Origin: Amoeboaphelidium protococcarum X5
Lineage: Eukaryota > Fungi > Aphelidiomycota
Direction: 5' to 3'
Assembly (NCBI GenBank): GCA_023515725.1
Contig: JALDTO010000011.1
Location: 1 to 9,375 of the forward strand
DNA length: 9,375 nt
Positions 1-9,375 of the stretch are shown piece after piece (the stretch's first letter is position 1; each line of letters opens with the position of its first letter). Below the pieces are notes generated by a model, which saw only the letters and a list, made by a program, of their open reading frames with translations, was not told the DNA's origin and did not search any database. The position numbers and the translations under genes are program-made.

Positions 1-76
1 TGATGGTGCCAAAGAACGCGGATGTTGATAACATCTCTGCCAATTATGAGAATGGCGTCTTGGAGGTGAAGATTCC
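1..76 (+). repeat. Terminal direct repeat, copy 1 (identical to 9300-9375)
   Basis: tgatggtgccaaagaacgcg...gaggtgaagattcc matches the last 76 bases of the window base for base. Confidence 0.97.
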
Positions 77-125
77 GAAGAAGACTGAAGGTTTACCTCA
101 GAAAAAGGCGATTTCTGTAAACTGA
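1..125 (+). CDS. Small heat-shock protein (Hsp20/alpha-crystallin domain), 3' part
   Basis: The frame starting at base 3 reads MVPKNADVDNISANYENGVLEVKIPKKTEGLPQKKAISVN-TGA(123-125). It contains the alpha-crystallin A-x-Y-x-NGVL-x-V-x-I-P-K motif and a C-terminal I-x-V motif (ISV). Confidence 0.93.
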   Translation, partial: MVPKNADVDNISANYENGVLEVKIPKKTEGLPQKKAISVN

Positions 126-286: not shown

Positions 287-982
287 ATGTCGATCATTTC
301 AAAGTTCACGGCACTTGGCGCTACTTTCAGTATGAACGATTTCTTAACAATTATTGTGAAAATATTAGGACTGTTTTTTACTATTGCATGCTTTCATGTT
401 GCGGTGGTCTCCAATGAAAGTCACTTCAAATTCAATGAGAGTGAAGTAAAAGACCCGTTCGCTAAAGTGGTCGTTAAATTCAATCAGAGCGTCAAAGCTG
501 GTGCCTTGCTGATGTATGCTATTGCATTCCTAATGTACGTTGTTCCTCCTTTAAGAATTTATAGATGGCTTACAGTTGGTGGATTATATGATGCTTTTGG
601 CAGAATACGTCAGTGGTCATTTGTCGATACTTTGAGCATTATATTAGTTCTAGGTGGTTGCGCGTTAAGAATTTCAGCCTACCGCGCTCTCGGTCAATAC
701 TTTACCTATGTAGTCACTATCAAAGATGAGCACAAGTTGGTTACAGATGGCCCGTATCAGTATCTGGTCCATCCGTCGTACACTGCGCTTTTACTTGTGA
801 CTATTGGTATGTAACTGTATCATGGCACTCGCAGTTGGATTGTCGTTCTGAACACGGCATTGTTTACCGGTGCTGTTTTGTACAGAATCCAATACGAGGA
901 GGAGGCTTTGTATCAACAATTTGGCCGGCATTATCAAGATTTCATCCACTCACGATACCGTCTAATTCCCTTCCTGTATTGA
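287..982 (+). CDS. Isoprenylcysteine carboxyl methyltransferase (ICMT/Ste14)/PEMT-family integral membrane methyltransferase, 231 aa
   Basis: Hydrophobic helices and the motif ALGQYFTYVVTIKDEHKLVTDGPYQYLVHPSYT. Reading TAA 812-814 as Gln adds QLYHGTRSWIVVLNTALFTGAVLYRIQYEEEALYQQFGRHYQDFIHSRYRLIPFLY-TGA(980-982), which supplies the family's RIxxEE..L...FG..Y and IPF C-terminal motifs. Confidence 0.9.
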
Positions 983-1291
983 TAAGTGAACTTTGGTTGC
1001 TAATATACTTAACGTTTTGGTATACATGATTGCTTTCCTGGACTTGATGTATTCTGCGTTATTCCAAATCTACATGCTTGCGTAATACTGGGCATTACAG
1101 AGCATATCAAATAGACAAAGTCTAAACCGAAACGCTTCGTTCCAAGATGACACGGGCGACGCGTTTTCGATCCGCCGAGCTTTGTCTCAACTCGCCTCTT
1201 TTTCTTTCCTCTTCCAACGCCACGCGCAGAGCTAATACGAAAGCATATATCTTATCACTTTCTATACTTGTATACCGTAGGAAGCCTAAAA

Positions 1292-3713
1292 ATGCACAGT
1301 ATTAATAAGGAGTTGAGTGCAGTCATGATTGCTTTGCTCTCAGGCTAGGTAATTTTAATTTTTAAAGTTCATTTTTCTTTTACATACTGTACAAAGTGAG
1401 TATGTGTGTGTGTAGACTTTGGATGTCAGAAGAGAGTTGATTTTGGAGAAGGTTCTGAGAGATCCTTTGGTGGTTCGGTACAAGCATGACAGATTGAACA
1501 TGAGTAGGCCTGGTAGAATGCACATGGCATTGCAAGTTTGCAAACGAATAGTCTAGTTGAAATGTTAACTGCTGCTTAATAAGGATGAAGTTGCGTACTT
1601 GCTCTATCTTGTTGATGACCTGTTGCCAATCTCGCTTCATTTAACTCTGGTTACAGACTTTATACAGGATCAAGCGTCTGAGTAGCAGGCCAAAGCACTT
1701 GTGCCTCATCTGGAAAGGTTTGAGTACATTGGGTGTTATGCGTAGACGGAATTGGGTCATGGTAGTGATGTTTCCGGTATTCTTACCTCAGCCACTTATG
1801 TCAAGGAACGTGATTAGTTTGATATTCACTCGCCAAGTTTGGAGGCTACCAAGATGTGGGCAGGTGGCTCAGGAATTCTGGCTACGCATGCAATTCTAAT
1901 GGCTCGCCTTATCGTAGACGGTAAAGATTATGGAGTACATGCATTTTTCATACGTATTCGCGATGCTGAGAGTCATAGAGCTATGCCAGGAATATTAATT
2001 GCAGATCTCGGATCTAAGATGGGCGTCAACTCTGCAGACAATGGAGCTATCACTTTTAATCATTACCGCGTTGGTAGAGATTGTCTGCTGATGAAGCATT
2101 GCCAGTTGGATAGAAATGGTGTTTATACTCCACCCAAGGATCCCAAAGCTTTATACAGTGGAATGACTTTGTTGAGAACTTACTTCCTCAATTATTCTGC
2201 TCTAGCTCTATCACGTGCTGTCACTATCGCGGTTAGATACGCTCATGTGAGAAAACAATTTAAAGATATCAACAGTGTAGAGGTCCCTTTGATTCAGCAC
2301 CAGAGTATTTAGTATCGCCTTATTCCTGCAGTGGGTCTAACTTATGCAATTGCGTTTGCATCTTTTAGTTTGAATGTTCGGATGAAGTAGTTGCAGTTTG
2401 GTGGATCTAAAGATAGTCTGAAAGCTTATCACATTTAATGTTGTACGTTGAAGGTGCTGTCTACGGCTGAGAGTGCTAAATGTATTGAAGTGTGCAGAAT
2501 GGCTTGTGGTGGTAATGGGTACTTGAACTGCTCGGGATTTGCTGAAAATTACAATTCTTTTGTCCATATGCTTACTGCTGAAGGGGAAAATCATGTCCTG
2601 AGTCTGCAAGTGGGTAATAGTGCATTGAAATCCGTGGCGTAGGTTGTGTCAGGTTCTAAGCTTGATAATGCAGACTTTGAGTTTCTTCGCAAGCACTATA
2701 AGAATGAATTTGTGGTCACCTCAATCGCTGATGCATAATCAATCGTTGCTGTTTTTGAACACAGAGCAGCTTTGATGGCCTTCAAGTTGTATGATTTAGT
2801 CTAGCAGATGGTTGTCAGTGGATTATCAGAGATTGAGGCAGTTGGTCGTTTACAATCCGATATGTACAAGTTCACATTTGCACTCGGTCAGTATCGTTTG
2901 ATTGAAAACTTTAAAACTGCGCTGGATGGTCCTTTACCCAAATTGCCTTCATTTAAATATGGAAAGCAGTCGGCGTTTAATTTGATGAAGAAACCCTTGA
3001 GCCAGTTGAATGGTGATGTGGCAAGTGCTTTGAATGTGCTATTTAAATGTTATGCCTTCTATTTGATTAACGAAAACACTATGGACTTTGTAGAATGTGG
3101 TTCGCTGAATGCGTCAAAGTTGAAGCAAGTTCTTACGTAGCTGTTGTATTAGAAAGAGTCGTTACTGCAATCTGTTGTTCCCTATTTGCCGATGTTTGTT
3201 AATTCATTGGCTGTTCCAGACTTTGTTGTAAATTCAGCTATTGGCCACTCTGATGGTAAAGTTTACGACCGCGTTTGGGATAGTGTCGTGTTTAGTGGTG
3301 TCAATACGTAGAACTCCTTATTGAACCCTCCTAATCTACAGAAACATGCCAAGAGTTTGACTGATGTTGTGCCTGATGGGAATCTGAATAAAATATTCAA
3401 CAGAGAGATTTATGAGAATTTGAGTGCTTTGTAGATCTCTGTCTCAACTGCTACCCATCAGATCCGCGCCCCTGGTAGAATTATGCGAAATATTGAGGCA
3501 AGATCGGATGGGAAGATGGCAATGTCCTCAATGTACAGCGAGTTGGGAGACGGTCAAGATCATGACTAGGAAACTGAAACGGAGAAGTAATCTGCTGAGA
3601 ATGTGCGTTAATGGATTGAGACGCATGCGCTAGTCATAAAGCCACTGGTATCCGGGGCCGTCTTTGCTGAAGCTCAGGGTGACTCTGGCATGAAGCCCAA
3701 GTCTAATTTGTGA
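1292..3713 (+). CDS. ACOX: Peroxisomal acyl-CoA oxidase, about 784 aa; exons 1292-1348 and 1416-3713
   Basis: One TGA-free frame runs from 1416 to 3713 and joins track ORFs 1839, 2448 and 2808 when TAR=Gln. Motifs: GCYA(Q=TAG)TELGHGSDV, KMWAGG, GVHAF, DLGSKMG..SADNG, AVTIAVRYAHVRKQF, (Q=TAG)YRLIP, CRMACGGNGY, catalytic TAEGEN, NSAIGHSDGKVY. The C-terminus is KPKSNL-TGA (PTS1-like). Exon 1 and the start codon are inferred from splice signals. Confidence 0.92.
1349..1415 (+). other. Spliceosomal intron (67 bp, phase 0) in the acyl-CoA oxidase gene
   Basis: AT-rich GTAATT...TGTAG. Removing it joins MHSINKELSAVMIALLSGQ in frame to TLDVRRELILEK. Confidence 0.75.
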
Positions 3714-3748
3714 ATATTGATTTATTTGACTTTTACCTTAATATATTG

Positions 3749-3836
3749 ACGCGTCTATGAAAATTAAATTTCCTGTTTCACTTTCGGTTTCAGCAGCATT
3801 GGTCGCGCCTTAACGCGTTCTGTAACGTTGACCAAT
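3749..3836. promoter_or_regulatory. Candidate promoter motifs: two ACGCGT (MCB-like) boxes and two CCAAT boxes
   Basis: ACGCGT at 3749-3754 and 3813-3818, ATTGG at 3798-3802 and CCAAT at 3832-3836, all within the 242-bp gap upstream of ATG 3956. Confidence 0.4.
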
Positions 3837-3955
3837 TGACGCCGCTTACATTAGAATGGCTCTGCACTCTGCCCCTCTATTCTACCTTTACATCTCTGAT
3901 TAATTTATACATTTTGGTATTCTATTCACTTTTAATTTTGGAAAATTTTAGGAAA

Positions 3956-4402
3956 ATGACTACCGACGAGTAAACTAATGCTGGTTAGCAGCTTCAGGAT
4001 CAGGCTTCGTTGAAACGTTCACTGGAAGATGGTCCATCTGCTGCTACTCTTGCCTACACCACCAGAACCATTCTTAATTTGAATGATATTGAAGATGAAG
4101 AGAATGACATGGATTACCGTGAAGGCCTGAGTTCCGTCGTTGAGTAGCCAGAAGATGTCCAAACATCTCAGGATCTGCAAGATGGTCAAGACGACGATGA
4201 GGAGGATGATAATGACGATGAAGAGGAGGACTATGATATGATGGACGAAGATCTGGACCCAGAAGAGTATGCAAACTTGGTCAAGGAGGCTGAGATTGAT
4301 CTAAATGATTTGGGAACTCGTTCTCTGCGTACTGGTAAGAGAATTCCACTAAGTTATGAATCCAACTTGGATGAATAACGCGCAGTTTAATCTGAACAAT
4401 GA
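3956..4402 (+). CDS. Small highly acidic protein, 148 aa (possible histone chaperone-like, disordered nuclear protein)
   Basis: With TAR=Gln: MTTDEQTNAGQQLQDQASLKRSLEDG...QDDDEEDDNDDEEEDYDMMDEDLDPEEYANLVKEAEIDLNDLGTRSLRTGKRIPLSYESNLDEQRAVQSEQ-TGA(4400-4402). ATG in AAAATG context, strong GAN codon periodicity, five in-frame TAR. Not present in the ORF track. Confidence 0.82.
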
Positions 4403-4472
4403 TCAAACTGACACAAAGTAAGTAAGTTGTGTGAAACTTGGTCTATCTATTATCTATCAATCTATATTTCAC

Positions 4473-5913
4473 TCAATTTTCCAATTTACTCTTTATATTT
4501 CGTTAAATACTCTCAAAGTATTTGGAACTGGTGCGCTAATCAACATTGCTGGCGAGGCCTTTATCGCGCAAGAGCCAGCCAATTTCAGTTTACATGTCAG
4601 TCTTGGCTCTCTTCAACTAAAAAACTTCTTGCTTTAATCTATCTTGAATAGCTTCAGATTCACTTTTCACAGCATTTAATTCAGTTAAATGTCTTTGAAG
4701 TATCTCTTCTAGTTCACCTCTTCGTTCGCGTTAAACAGCACTGAGCTGATTCTGAATATGGACAACCTCGCGTAAGAGACGATCATTTTAAGCACTCAAC
4801 TACTTCACCGCCAGTTCGGCTTCTTCGCGATTAAATAAAGCTTCTCTAAGGGCGGATTAAACTGAATTAAACTTGTCATCAACAGAGTCGAAATCCTCCT
4901 TGTACCTCCTGACCAGCTTCTAATGAGCATCAACAAGATCAGAAAGATCAGCTTTCAATTTTCGGCTCTCTTTAAGTTCCAAAGCCATGTCTCTCTTCAA
5001 TTTCCTTATGCTAGCTAGTAGAAGCCGATCATTATCCACAATAATCTCGACGTTATTATTACGGTCATGATAGTTATTCAGCCACTGCAAGATATTCATC
5101 TCCTGGCAACATTACTCGAATTCTTCAGTTTTATTTCTAGACGCGTCAAACCATTACTTCATCTTGTGATAGCTCTCTCGCATCGTTTGATCAGACTCCA
5201 TCACCTCTTTATGCTATTTCTCCATCGCATGAATCTAGTTACTCATTTTCATAGTCTTGGCCTACTCCGCTTTCAACTAGATACTCAAATCATGATTGAT
5301 TTCCTTTTATTTAGACAAATGGGAGTTGAGATCGCGAATGGCATCAGATTCTGCCACCAAACTCTGCTTTTCCATCTGTTTCATCTTGGCCTCCAGTTCG
5401 AACGATTTTCTGATCAGCAGCTCGTTGCCCCGTTGATTCTCCATTAAGAGTGTGTTCTCTTCAAGCAAAATATCCACCTTCTTGCGCATAACTACTTCAT
5501 TGTTCTATCTCTTTTTTAGTTCTTCATTCTCCCTTTACAAATCATTCATCTTGTCTTGTACACGTTGCATTTGGGACTCAAACTTCTTCATCACTTCTCG
5601 CTGATACTCCAGTCTCTCATCGTAACCGTGTATCAATGGAATCAAGATTTTATCAAGTTCTTGATTTCTGAATCCTCTCTAAATTAGTTCTATATCATGT
5701 TCAATCTAACTCTGTGGTTCGTGTGGATATCTCATTTGATAAAACTGAGTCAATGCAGCATATCTGGCAACTACAACAATTGTTACATCAACATTTCGTT
5801 TAAGCGTTAGAATACTTACGGCTTTGCTTTAACACACACATTGACTTTGGACTTTATCCCTAATTGTTATCTGTCTTTACTTCTTAAACACCCGCTGCTG
5901 ATATCATTATCAT
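4473..5913 (-). CDS. Coiled-coil protein, CEP89/CCDC123-like (about 460 aa; start uncertain); exons about 5913-5820 and 5770-4473
   Basis: TGA-free minus frame from 5770 to TGA 4475-4473 with about 20 in-frame TAR and E/K/Q/L/M heptad composition. The segment KILIPLIHGYDERL...QRENEELKKR...ILLEENTLLME resembles the CEP89 conserved block as I recall it. The first in-frame ATG is at 5913 if the intron is real; alternatives are 5841 and 5735. Confidence 0.8.
5771..5819 (-). other. Probable spliceosomal intron (49 bp) in the coiled-coil gene
   Basis: The minus strand reads C|GTAAGTATTCTAAC...GTAACAATTGTTGTAG|TT, with a consensus GTAAGT donor and TAG acceptor. An alternative CAG acceptor lies at 5766-5764. 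Confidence 0.6.
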
Positions 5914-6127
5914 TAAGATTTCTTGAATACGAGCTACTAAAGTTTTTCCTTTTTAAAGATTTAACTCTGGCTTAATGGAGAATCCCTTCAACAGAAGTGT
6001 CTCTTGGCAACCATAATCAAGATGGAGATCAATAATAATATCTGACCTTTCAATAAAGTCGTGAAACGAATGGTAAAGTATAAAAAAAATAATATGAATT
6101 ATAGAATTCTATATATCACCTGCTGAA

Positions 6128-7894
6128 TCAATTTTAAGCCACTCCATCGGCTGAGCCATTGACAGCATTGCCTCCAGTGGCGCCAGCAGGTCTGGTGGTT
6201 GGCTTCAAACTCACTTTGTAATCCAACTTATTCGTCACCAACTGCCACATCATTGCATTGATACCTGGAATCAAGTAATAAGCAAAGAGACAGAACGGAA
6301 GACCGGCCCAGTCAATAATCTGATACCACTTTCTGAATGCAACCCGACTCTGAGCGAATTCGTCAATCGCGTCATGGTGATCAACGTCTTTCATCATCAG
6401 ATCGCCTTCATGCGCGAATCGATCACTATTGTCGCTAGCACAATTCTTCAAAGGTGAAGCCAGTTCAACGGAATTGGCCAAAGACTCTTAGCTCATCTTA
6501 TCCTTGACTATCTTCAGGATAGAGGCGCGATAGTGACAAGCCAGATAGTGATATCTCTCATAGGCGAAAGCCACAATAATCGCTGGCGGAATCAACGCCA
6601 AATTGATATACGTAACATACTCAATAACAAAAGAACCAATACCAACCATAGACTGAGGAAATATGATCTGCGCAGTCAGATGGTAGAAACCAAAGTAAGG
6701 CTGGAAAAAGATTTCAAACAGCAGGTAGACACACAGGAACGATCTCAGAGGAGACTTGTACCAGCAACCTTCAATAATGATACTGGAGAAAGCGTAACCA
6801 AAATCCAAAGCTCCCCACAAGTGTCTCAAACTTTACTGGAAACGCGCGTTAACACTACCCAGATAAGTATCAGCTTAAACACAAGAACAACTGGCAGGAA
6901 CATAGATAGGAGTTGCAATCAAATTCATGCCCAGCTTGGTCCAACACTTCAGAGCCATGTGCATATCTTCACCGATAGCCTCTGGACCGGCATCCCAAAA
7001 GCCAACACGTTCAGCCAACTGCATAGTGATGGTGTACACTGAGCACGGAAACTTGACCACCAACTGAAAATTACTCATCAAACCGATAGACCAACAGATA
7101 TCCGCAAGTCTCACCACAAATGGCACGTCATTCGCATTACGGTCAAAAATCAGAGTAGGTGCAAACAGCATGCGCTTCTACTCATCCTCAGTGGCAATGC
7201 AATACTTGTAAGTAAGACAATCAAAGTACTTGGAAGTCAGATGAGTATCAGCATCCATGACAGTGATCACTTCATTCTTGGAATCATTGGCCAACATCCA
7301 ATTCTGATGATAGTAAGTGGCAGCCCATGCAACATTAGAACTCTTACCACGAGCCTCACCCGCAATACCAGATGGATGTACAGTGTACTTCATATCGAAA
7401 AAGCGATGACCAAATTCTTTAATCAAGCCCTCGGCCTTCTCTTCGCATCCCTTCTCGCCCTGCTCCATAGCCATGATGACTTTATAACAGTTCTTGGCCT
7501 AATAGTGATGAGCCAGAGTATCTAGAGTCTCGCACAGCACATCGCGATCCTCTTTATAGTTTGGTATAATGATCACATGCTTCACAGCAGATGGCTTGAC
7601 ATCAATCTCTCTTTCACCTTCCCAGCTGGCGACGACATCCCTATACTTGGCCATCCAGTCGAGATCAATGTGTTTTCTAGTCTTTATAGCGGTAATCACC
7701 AGACCGACAGCCAGGCGGACAGCGTTAGTCACCAGACACAATTTGAGCAGAGCTACCACCACCCAATACAGACCAGTGAGGTATAGCGGACCAAGGAAGA
7801 GCAGCAATGCTCCCAGAATGAACACTACACCGGGTATTCTCTACGACACAGCCCTCAAGGCTTACTAGAGCTGCAAATTTAGACTCTTTGACAT
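6128..7894 (-). CDS. Membrane glycosyltransferase family 2 (Glyco_trans_2_3-like, fungal-type), 588 aa, intronless
   Basis: Five track ORFs (7825, 7474, 7171, 6829, 6481) share one frame and are separated only by TAR codons. Start MSKSLNLQLQQALRAVSQRIPG at 7894; end ...ADGVAQN-TGA(6130-6128). Motifs IIIPNYKE, GKSSNV, MDADT (DxD), IGEDMH and RFQ(Q=TAA)SLRHLWG (QxxRW-like). Transmembrane helices lie on both sides of the catalytic domain. Confidence 0.92.
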
Positions 7895-8849
7895 TACGAT
7901 TTTTACAACAGATTCTTCTTATAATGGACTGCAAATTATTAAATACAAATGCAAAAACTATTACGGTGAGGATATATAGAGCTAGCTTCTTGATCAATAA
8001 TATGATGATGATGCAGCAGCAATTTATCCTATTTCGGAAGAGAAAGTTTATTGTTTACTTGGCACGAAGATCAGTCTCTAAGGAATCGTCGCAGTGAATT
8101 GAAATAGCAGTGTTTATAGATCAAGACAGCACTGGCGATAACGACGAGTAAATATATATAGATATACTAGCTCTACTACTAATACCAACAGCAATGTGCA
8201 GTGATGAACAACAAAAACTGATCAATAAACACGGTGTGTAACTACAAAGATTAAAGTCCGACGCCGCCTACTTTTAGGGCGTGTGGCACTGATTTTGCAC
8301 AGCGATTCGAAAAAATACTCCTGAAAATGTGGTCTTTGCTCCCGTTGACTCCTGATCATGATTTTTGATTTGAGGCTTACGGCTCTCGGTGGCTTATGAT
8401 TGGTCATTTCAAGGCGACGACTGCGTGACTTTTGTGTAGATTATATGGTGGCTTCTATTACGAGCTAAGTGGTCCAATTCGTGATTTTAAAGTTTACTAA
8501 GTGGATGCTGCAAGTTCAAAGCTTTGTTGAGAATAGGACTATCTACAACTAGCATAATCACGTTTTCTTAAATTTCAATCGTCTTGCAATGTGACTTTAG
8601 GTAGCGTTGGAGAGGCTAATGTGAGAAGATACATATGTGGTCAAAGAAAGACTGTTATACTGCTCTGTAATGATTGTTCTCCGAATACAACTTGATTCCG
8701 CTCTTTTAAAACATAGCTTCACTTCATTATCAGGTTAATACTCATTCTGGCATGGAACAGTTAAAATAACCACAAAGCAAATGCCGTGCTGTCTGATAGA
8801 ATGATCGCGAACAATTGTTTCAGTCGAATCACACAGTGTGGAATCAACG

Positions 8850-8864
8850 CGAAAGTTCTCGAAT
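8850..8864 (+). promoter_or_regulatory. Heat-shock element (HSF binding site)
   Basis: cGAAagTTCtcGAAt is three perfect alternating nGAAn units. Another in-phase GAA lies at 8841-8843. The element is about 115-130 bp upstream of the Hsp20 ATG. Confidence 0.85.
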
Positions 8865-8880
8865 GATAATATGATCACAC

Positions 8881-8887
8881 TATAAAA
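8881..8887 (+). promoter_or_regulatory. TATA box of the Hsp20 gene
   Basis: TATAAAA lies 16 bp downstream of the HSE and is followed by an A-rich leader and AAAAAATG. Confidence 0.75.
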
Positions 8888-8977
8888 CGGCATATTACAC
8901 ACTCTCACTCTTTATCCTCCTTACGATCTGTAACAATTAAAAGCGAATAAAAGAAAAACTATAAGCAAGGATAAAAA

Positions 8978-9375
8978 ATGAGCCTATTCTTTGATGATGA
9001 ATTTGTGTTTAATCGCCTGAATCAAATGCTGCAAACGTTTGAAAAGAGTGCAGAAGGTGGTAGAGATGAACGTGCTTTGGTGTCACCTTCATACAAGACT
9101 GCATTCCCTATCGATGTAATTGAACGTGAAAATGACTACTTGGTGCAATCTGAACTGGCTGGTATCCCAAAGGAGGCTATCTAGATTGAACTGGCGAATA
9201 ATAAGTTGAGAATCTTTGGTGAAAACTCGCAGAGCCGTGACGATCAACAAGGCAAGTGGCACGTACAGGAACGCTCTTATGGCAAGTTTGAACGTACGTT
9301 GATGGTGCCAAAGAACGCGGATGTTGATAACATCTCTGCCAATTATGAGAATGGCGTCTTGGAGGTGAAGATTCC
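8978..9375 (+). CDS. Small heat-shock protein (Hsp20), 5' part; runs off the window end and continues at the window start (148 aa if joined)
   Basis: MSLFFDDEF...FPIDVIERENDYLVQSELAGIPKEAI(Q=TAG 9182-9184)IELANNKLRIFGE...WHVQERSYGKFERTLMVPKNADVDNISANYENGVLEVKIP, a complete alpha-crystallin domain signature. Confidence 0.94.
9300..9375 (+). repeat. Terminal direct repeat, copy 2 (identical to 1-76)
   Basis: Exact 76-bp match to the window start. Confidence 0.97.

Follow-up and report, generated by a model that had tools for sequence, protein, structure and literature searches.

The window, as we call the whole stretch of DNA analysed here, is 9,375 nucleotides long and makes up the entire contig C11 (JALDTO010000011.1) of a 23.6-Mb, 346-contig assembly (GCA_023515725.1) of the aphelid Amoeboaphelidium protococcarum X5, a species that parasitizes algae and has two public assemblies. 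The matter at hand is the genetic code in which its genes are written: under the standard code the longest open reading frame (ORF) has 194 codons, whereas translation table 6, in which UAA and UAG (UAR; TAR in DNA) are glutamine and UGA is the stop, gives six long frames. These encode a methyltransferase of the ICMT/Ste14-PEMT family, an acyl-CoA oxidase (ACOX), an acidic protein, a protein of coiled-coil-like composition, a GT2 glycosyltransferase and an Hsp20, and the 3′ end of another Hsp20 gene lies upstream of them (Table 1); no tRNA gene was found in the window. With each gene counted from its first in-frame ATG, there are 55 TAR codons in frame in the six genes (ICMT 1, ACOX 19, acidic 5, coiled-coil 20, GT2 9, Hsp20 1), matching the rough count of 55 in an original prediction made from the letters of the window alone, and an extra upstream exon of the coiled-coil gene, missed at that time, adds three for a total of 58. 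As had also been claimed, no gene model of the window contains an internal TGA or a frameshift. The statement that all six genes end in TGA holds for the five that finish within the window; the Hsp20 gene beginning at 8978 runs off the contig and has its TGA on contig C124. The four codons that had been singled out (TAG 1743, TAG 2310, TAA 6835-6833 and TAA 812-814) are all where they were placed, and in-frame TAA and TAG are present in the eRF1, pelota and Hsp90 genes of the same genome as well.

The use of UAR for glutamine in the window is real, already known and applied in public annotation. An annotated public protein of 156 amino acids corresponds to the window ICMT read through TAA 812, and MIR68_006107, which is encoded at 100% identity on contig C192 of the same assembly, has one TAA inside its gene; the fear that the region would be mis-annotated under the standard code was thus unfounded, public proteins of this species being already read through TAA. 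A. protococcarum had been named only as a precedent for such a code, and it turns out to be the source organism itself.

Table 1. Features of the window and of related loci in the A. protococcarum assembly (positions without a prefix are window coordinates).
Feature	Position	Strand	TAR codons and stop	Remarks
Upstream Hsp20, 3′ end	1-125	+	stop TGA 123-125	contig C278 carries the 5′ part; bases 1-76 recur in the second Hsp20 copy
ICMT/Ste14-PEMT family methyltransferase, 216 aa	332-982	+	one TAA (812-814); stop TGA 980-982	Pfam PF04140/PF04191
Acyl-CoA oxidase (ACOX), 784 aa	1292-3713	+	5 TAA, 14 TAG; stop TGA 3711-3713	intron 1349-1415; Pfam ACOX
TAG in ACOX AQTE motif	1743-1745	+		column 89% Gln
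TAG in ACOX	2310-2312	+		column 80% Gln
Acidic protein, 148 aa	3956-4402	+	3 TAA, 2 TAG; stop TGA 4400-4402	no Pfam match
Coiled-coil-like protein (by composition), 461 aa	4473-5907	-	11 TAA, 12 TAG; stop TGA 4475-4473	intron 5819-5771; no Pfam match
GT2 glycosyltransferase, 588 aa	6128-7894	-	9 TAR; stop TGA 6130-6128	PF13632 (Glyco_trans_2_3); DAD, ED and QxxRH motifs; TAA 6835-6833 is the Q of QxxRH
Downstream Hsp20, 5′ part	8978-9375	+	one TAG (9182)	remainder on contig C124; Pfam HSP20
eRF1, two near-identical copies	L006:1423-2757 and L007:1276-2757			contigs C244 and C136
tRNA genes, CUA anticodon	C158:362956-363027; C200:31431-31502
tRNA genes, UUA anticodon	C158:383536-383608; C200:16432-16504
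tRNA-Gln(CUG) genes	C158:369025-369099; C200:30739-30813
Mitochondrial contig C346	28,427 bp (L069, L095, L096)			about 24% GC in first 10 kb

The A. protococcarum genome is duplicated, giving paired gene copies (PMC10608142), and these allow the codons to be compared directly. The window is 90.6% identical to a region of C192, which a DNA search with the whole window did not recover and a protein search did, and 91.0% identical to a syntenic region of the other strain. Contamination is ruled out by the 91% identity to C192 and by the same code being used there. Among 54 alignable TAR sites of the window, eight carry CAA or CAG in at least one homologous copy (TAA 812 of ICMT, for example, is CAG in a homologous gene) and two carry something else (TTG, TAC). 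TAR and CAR are exchanged in 30 of 254 codon pairs (11.8%) between the window and the two homologous regions, compared with 11.4% for the synonymous pair TTR/CTR, counts that are not independent because the two comparisons share ancestry; non-synonymous first-position C/T controls gave 0 (TAY/CAY), 0.7% (TTY/CTY), 2.2% (TCN/CCN) and 0 (TGY,TGG/CGY,CGG). Outside the window, 12 other duplicate gene pairs gave 12.4% for TAR/CAR, 11.4% for TTR/CTR, 1.5% for TAR/GAR, 0.2% for TAR/AAR and 0 for TAR/TAY, with both TAA and TAG taking part in the exchange with CAR. One eRF1 copy even writes its catalytic GGQ as GGT GGT TAG, where the other has GGT GGT CAG. These counts support the conclusion that TAR acts as a synonym of CAR between gene copies.

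A profile of 114 ACOX homologues, in which 13 columns were scored, points to the same amino acid: summed over the TAR sites, Gln scores best with 17.8 bits, Glu is second with 9.3 and all other residues are negative. The profile thus favours Gln and is weak evidence when taken alone, with two conserved Gln and two conserved Glu columns among its TAR sites.

Four tRNA genes suited to this decoding occur in the genome, as had been predicted: an identical pair whose anticodon is CUA and a second pair whose anticodon is UUA. They are of the Gln family: they match tRNA-Gln(UUG) and tRNA-Gln(CUG) at 49-52 bases and other tRNAs at 28-42, and have U73 and the T-arm in common with tRNA-Gln. Between the CUA and UUA tRNAs there are five differences. 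The CUA, CUG and UUA genes are linked on each of the two duplicate contigs, in a stretch of about 20 kb, with about 620 bases between CUG and CUA on C200, a linkage that suggests that the suppressor tRNAs arose through local duplication of a tRNA-Gln. The tRNA-Gln(CUG) itself had for a time seemed missing, being neither among the first 63 scored tRNAs nor in the results of one pattern search, until a second pattern found it. In all four suppressor genes (L059, L060, L067, L068) U1 faces C72 as a mismatch, and a second mismatch at 27:43 leaves the anticodon stem with four pairs; the two ordinary Gln tRNAs carry G1-C72. A weak first pair favours glutaminyl-tRNA synthetase in bacteria.

The release factor eRF1 is encoded by two near-identical copies, each with at least 13 TAR codons. 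Relative to human eRF1 it carries the substitutions T58A, S60V, L124M, L126Q and K130R, by which TASNIKS becomes AAVNIKS and LYLCDNKF becomes MYQCDNRF, while NIKS, GTS and the Y, C and F of YxCxxxF are intact. The sequence following the GTS region is MVSMII, and a TAG codon takes the place of the conserved N-terminal E that precedes IWK. The residues 122-126 cluster is the part changed in the Stylonychia-derived QFM_F mutant, which has UGA-only specificity (PMC3632111); L124M occurs in the Stylonychia QFM motif too, and position 126 is Gln here and Phe there. A UGA-only eRF1 had been predicted: the factor is indeed altered at TASNIKS and YxCxxxF, and these changes make UGA-only behaviour plausible.

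In contigs of sequencing run X6 both window introns, which are short and of the GT-AG type on the coding strand, are skipped (1349-1415 and 5819-5771), and a poly(A) tail appears at about 6093, 35 bases beyond the TGA of GT2; neither splice joint is seen in the DNA run X1. As its contigs skip introns and bear poly(A), and X1 shows neither joint, X6 is probably derived from RNA. The X6 contig over 1413-2185 shows 40 differences, and none of the 39 that are listed falls in the TAR codons at 1554, 1566, 1683, 1743 or 1815. These codons are not taken out by editing or splicing, an outcome that the original prediction had named as one that would refute it.

The mitochondrial contig has genes that stop at TAA and are split by introns with ORFs, and no UUA or CUA suppressor tRNA was found on it, so the code change is nuclear only. 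Only four tRNA genes were found there (Trp, Gln, Asn and Tyr), which implies tRNA import, and the UUA and CUA tRNAs, if imported, would clash with the mitochondrial TAA stops.

Taken together, the window is almost certainly nuclear DNA of A. protococcarum that uses table 6. In the mechanism we propose, UAA and UAG would be read as glutamine by dedicated UUA and CUA tRNAs derived from tRNA-Gln, whose kinship to that family suggests that they are charged with glutamine; the changes in the stop-reading N-domain of eRF1 would prevent termination at UAR; and UGA would be left as the nuclear stop, the mitochondrion keeping TAA. Several points weigh against this interpretation. The support for UAR as Gln is all at the level of sequence, run X6 consists of assembled contigs from a related strain with the library type unrecorded, and about ten stop codons were inspected out of the whole gene set. 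Also, of the four TAR sites in well-conserved ACOX columns, two (TAG 1683 and TAG 1815) fall where 74-75% of the residues are Glu, so the original claim that TAR sits at conserved Gln columns is true of TAG 1743 and TAG 2310 and not of these two. This would fit a code in which UAA and UAG encode Glu or a mixture of Gln and Glu, as would the pooled ACOX columns (23% Glu and 21% Gln at TAR sites, 7% Glu at CAR sites) and the six TAR/GAR swaps against two CAR/GAR swaps in the duplicate gene pairs. However, TAR is exchanged with CAR at the synonymous rate and eight times as often as with GAR, TAG occupies the catalytic GGQ of eRF1, and the suppressor tRNAs match tRNA-Glu at only 33-35 bases; the Glu excess, seen in 13 scored columns, may be accounted for by the single G-to-T change that makes TAR from GAR, a conservative Glu-to-Gln substitution, and we consider a code with Glu, alone or mixed with Gln, extremely unlikely.

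It could also be asked whether UAR is Gln inside genes and continues to act as a stop close to the 3′ end, in the way of Blastocrithidia or Condylostoma, given the intact NIKS, GTS and Y/C/F residues of eRF1 and given that the GT2 and acidic genes have TAA at a distance of two to four codons from their TGA. The stops themselves make this very unlikely: each examined gene ends in TGA, the terminal TGA of the five genes is kept in both homologous regions, TGA is also the stop of both copies of eRF1 and of eight genes called in the syntenic region, and in this sample of genes, as in the window, no TGA is internal; the near-terminal TAA of GT2 is missing in the homologues, whose frames continue as far as that same TGA, and a near-terminal TAA of the coiled-coil gene is CAG in both homologous regions. 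A broader form of the idea, in which the decoding of UAR is incomplete, some UAA or UAG near the poly(A) tail still terminating or a share being read as Glu, is conceivable because of the intact eRF1 motifs together with the unpaired first pair and four-pair anticodon stem of the suppressor tRNAs; we think it very improbable, and if true it would mean that a close relative of fungi has reassigned UAR incompletely. The short standard-code ORFs might be taken to mean pseudogenes, or genes that lose their stops through RNA editing or splicing, and to this we give next to no credence: there are no frameshifts, differences between copies are concentrated at third positions, essential genes such as both eRF1 copies are full of TAR codons, the spliced X6 contig has no listed change at its five TAR codons, and the cognate UUA and CUA tRNAs exist.

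For the genes of the window, Pfam and protein databases were searched with stop-free pieces of the gene models in place of spliced or read-through translations. ICMT has A. protococcarum proteins 92-93% identical to it, the best match being MP228_005072 (93%), whose cluster also contains MIR68_006107 and the 156-residue protein of the window, and its start is most likely at 332, because an ATG at 287 reads TTG in both homologous regions. The length of ACOX is identical in the annotation of the other strain; a C-terminal extension of about 130 amino acids (window 3300-3713) is missing from most homologues, and the C-terminus SNL is possibly a weak peroxisomal signal. GT2 is a fungal-type membrane enzyme with no product assigned, its nearest Atlas clusters being unnamed ascomycete and basidiomycete proteins. 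Relatives that are about 90-97% identical turn up in metagenomes of biofilm, sediment and freshwater, as well as in data sets that bear the names of other organisms (runs X7, X13, X14, X15-X17).

Bases 1-76 and 9300-9375 of the window are identical, and this 76-base sequence also stands at the ends of contigs C278 and C124. The contig thus looks circular, and the assembly broke there, because of a repeat common to two Hsp20 paralogues, which lie 9.3 kb apart and are only about 83% alike overall. A circular element is ruled out, since C278 and C124 carry the same ends and the two syntenic regions are linear (Hsp90, Hsp20, ICMT, ACOX, acidic, coiled-coil, GT2, Hsp20, peptidase C13), and joining the end of the window to its start was dropped because the product is a chimeric Hsp20. 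Similar matches recur in both homologous regions, and the 76-nucleotide identity looks like gene conversion. In the other strain (L072:1-8663) a heat-shock gene cluster is made up of the first Hsp20 and, upstream of it, a pair of Hsp90 genes that face each other.

The reassignment of UAR to Gln in A. protococcarum goes back to Karpov et al. (2013, Protist 164:195) and is treated as established in PMC5304391, PMC6299283 and PMC11687900, and the code of the window agrees with it in species, codons and amino acid. The code itself therefore adds little as a finding, and the modest use of the present analysis is a parts list, namely four suppressor tRNA genes beside tRNA-Gln(CUG) and a few substitutions in an eRF1 otherwise very like the human and yeast factors, which offer a simple test of how UAR termination is lost in a lineage related to fungi. 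A description of the suppressor tRNAs or eRF1 of this species was not found in the literature searched, which left out the 2022 genome paper (Mikhailov et al., Curr Biol 32:4607) that might contain one. Table 6, with UAR as Gln and UGA as stop, is shared with ciliates (Tetrahymena, Paramecium, Stylonychia), Hexamita, Streblomastix and ulvophyte algae; such systems also share UUA and CUA tRNAs of Gln origin and eRF1 changes in the 122-126 cluster and before NIKS (PMC3632111). The A. protococcarum code differs in having arisen independently, in a fungus-related lineage; the related aphelid Paraphelidium has the standard code (PMC6299283). In-frame UAR is also shared with the context-dependent stop systems of Blastocrithidia, Condylostoma and Amoebophrya sp. 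ex Karlodinium, from which A. protococcarum differs in having no in-frame TGA and in that all inspected genes end in TGA.

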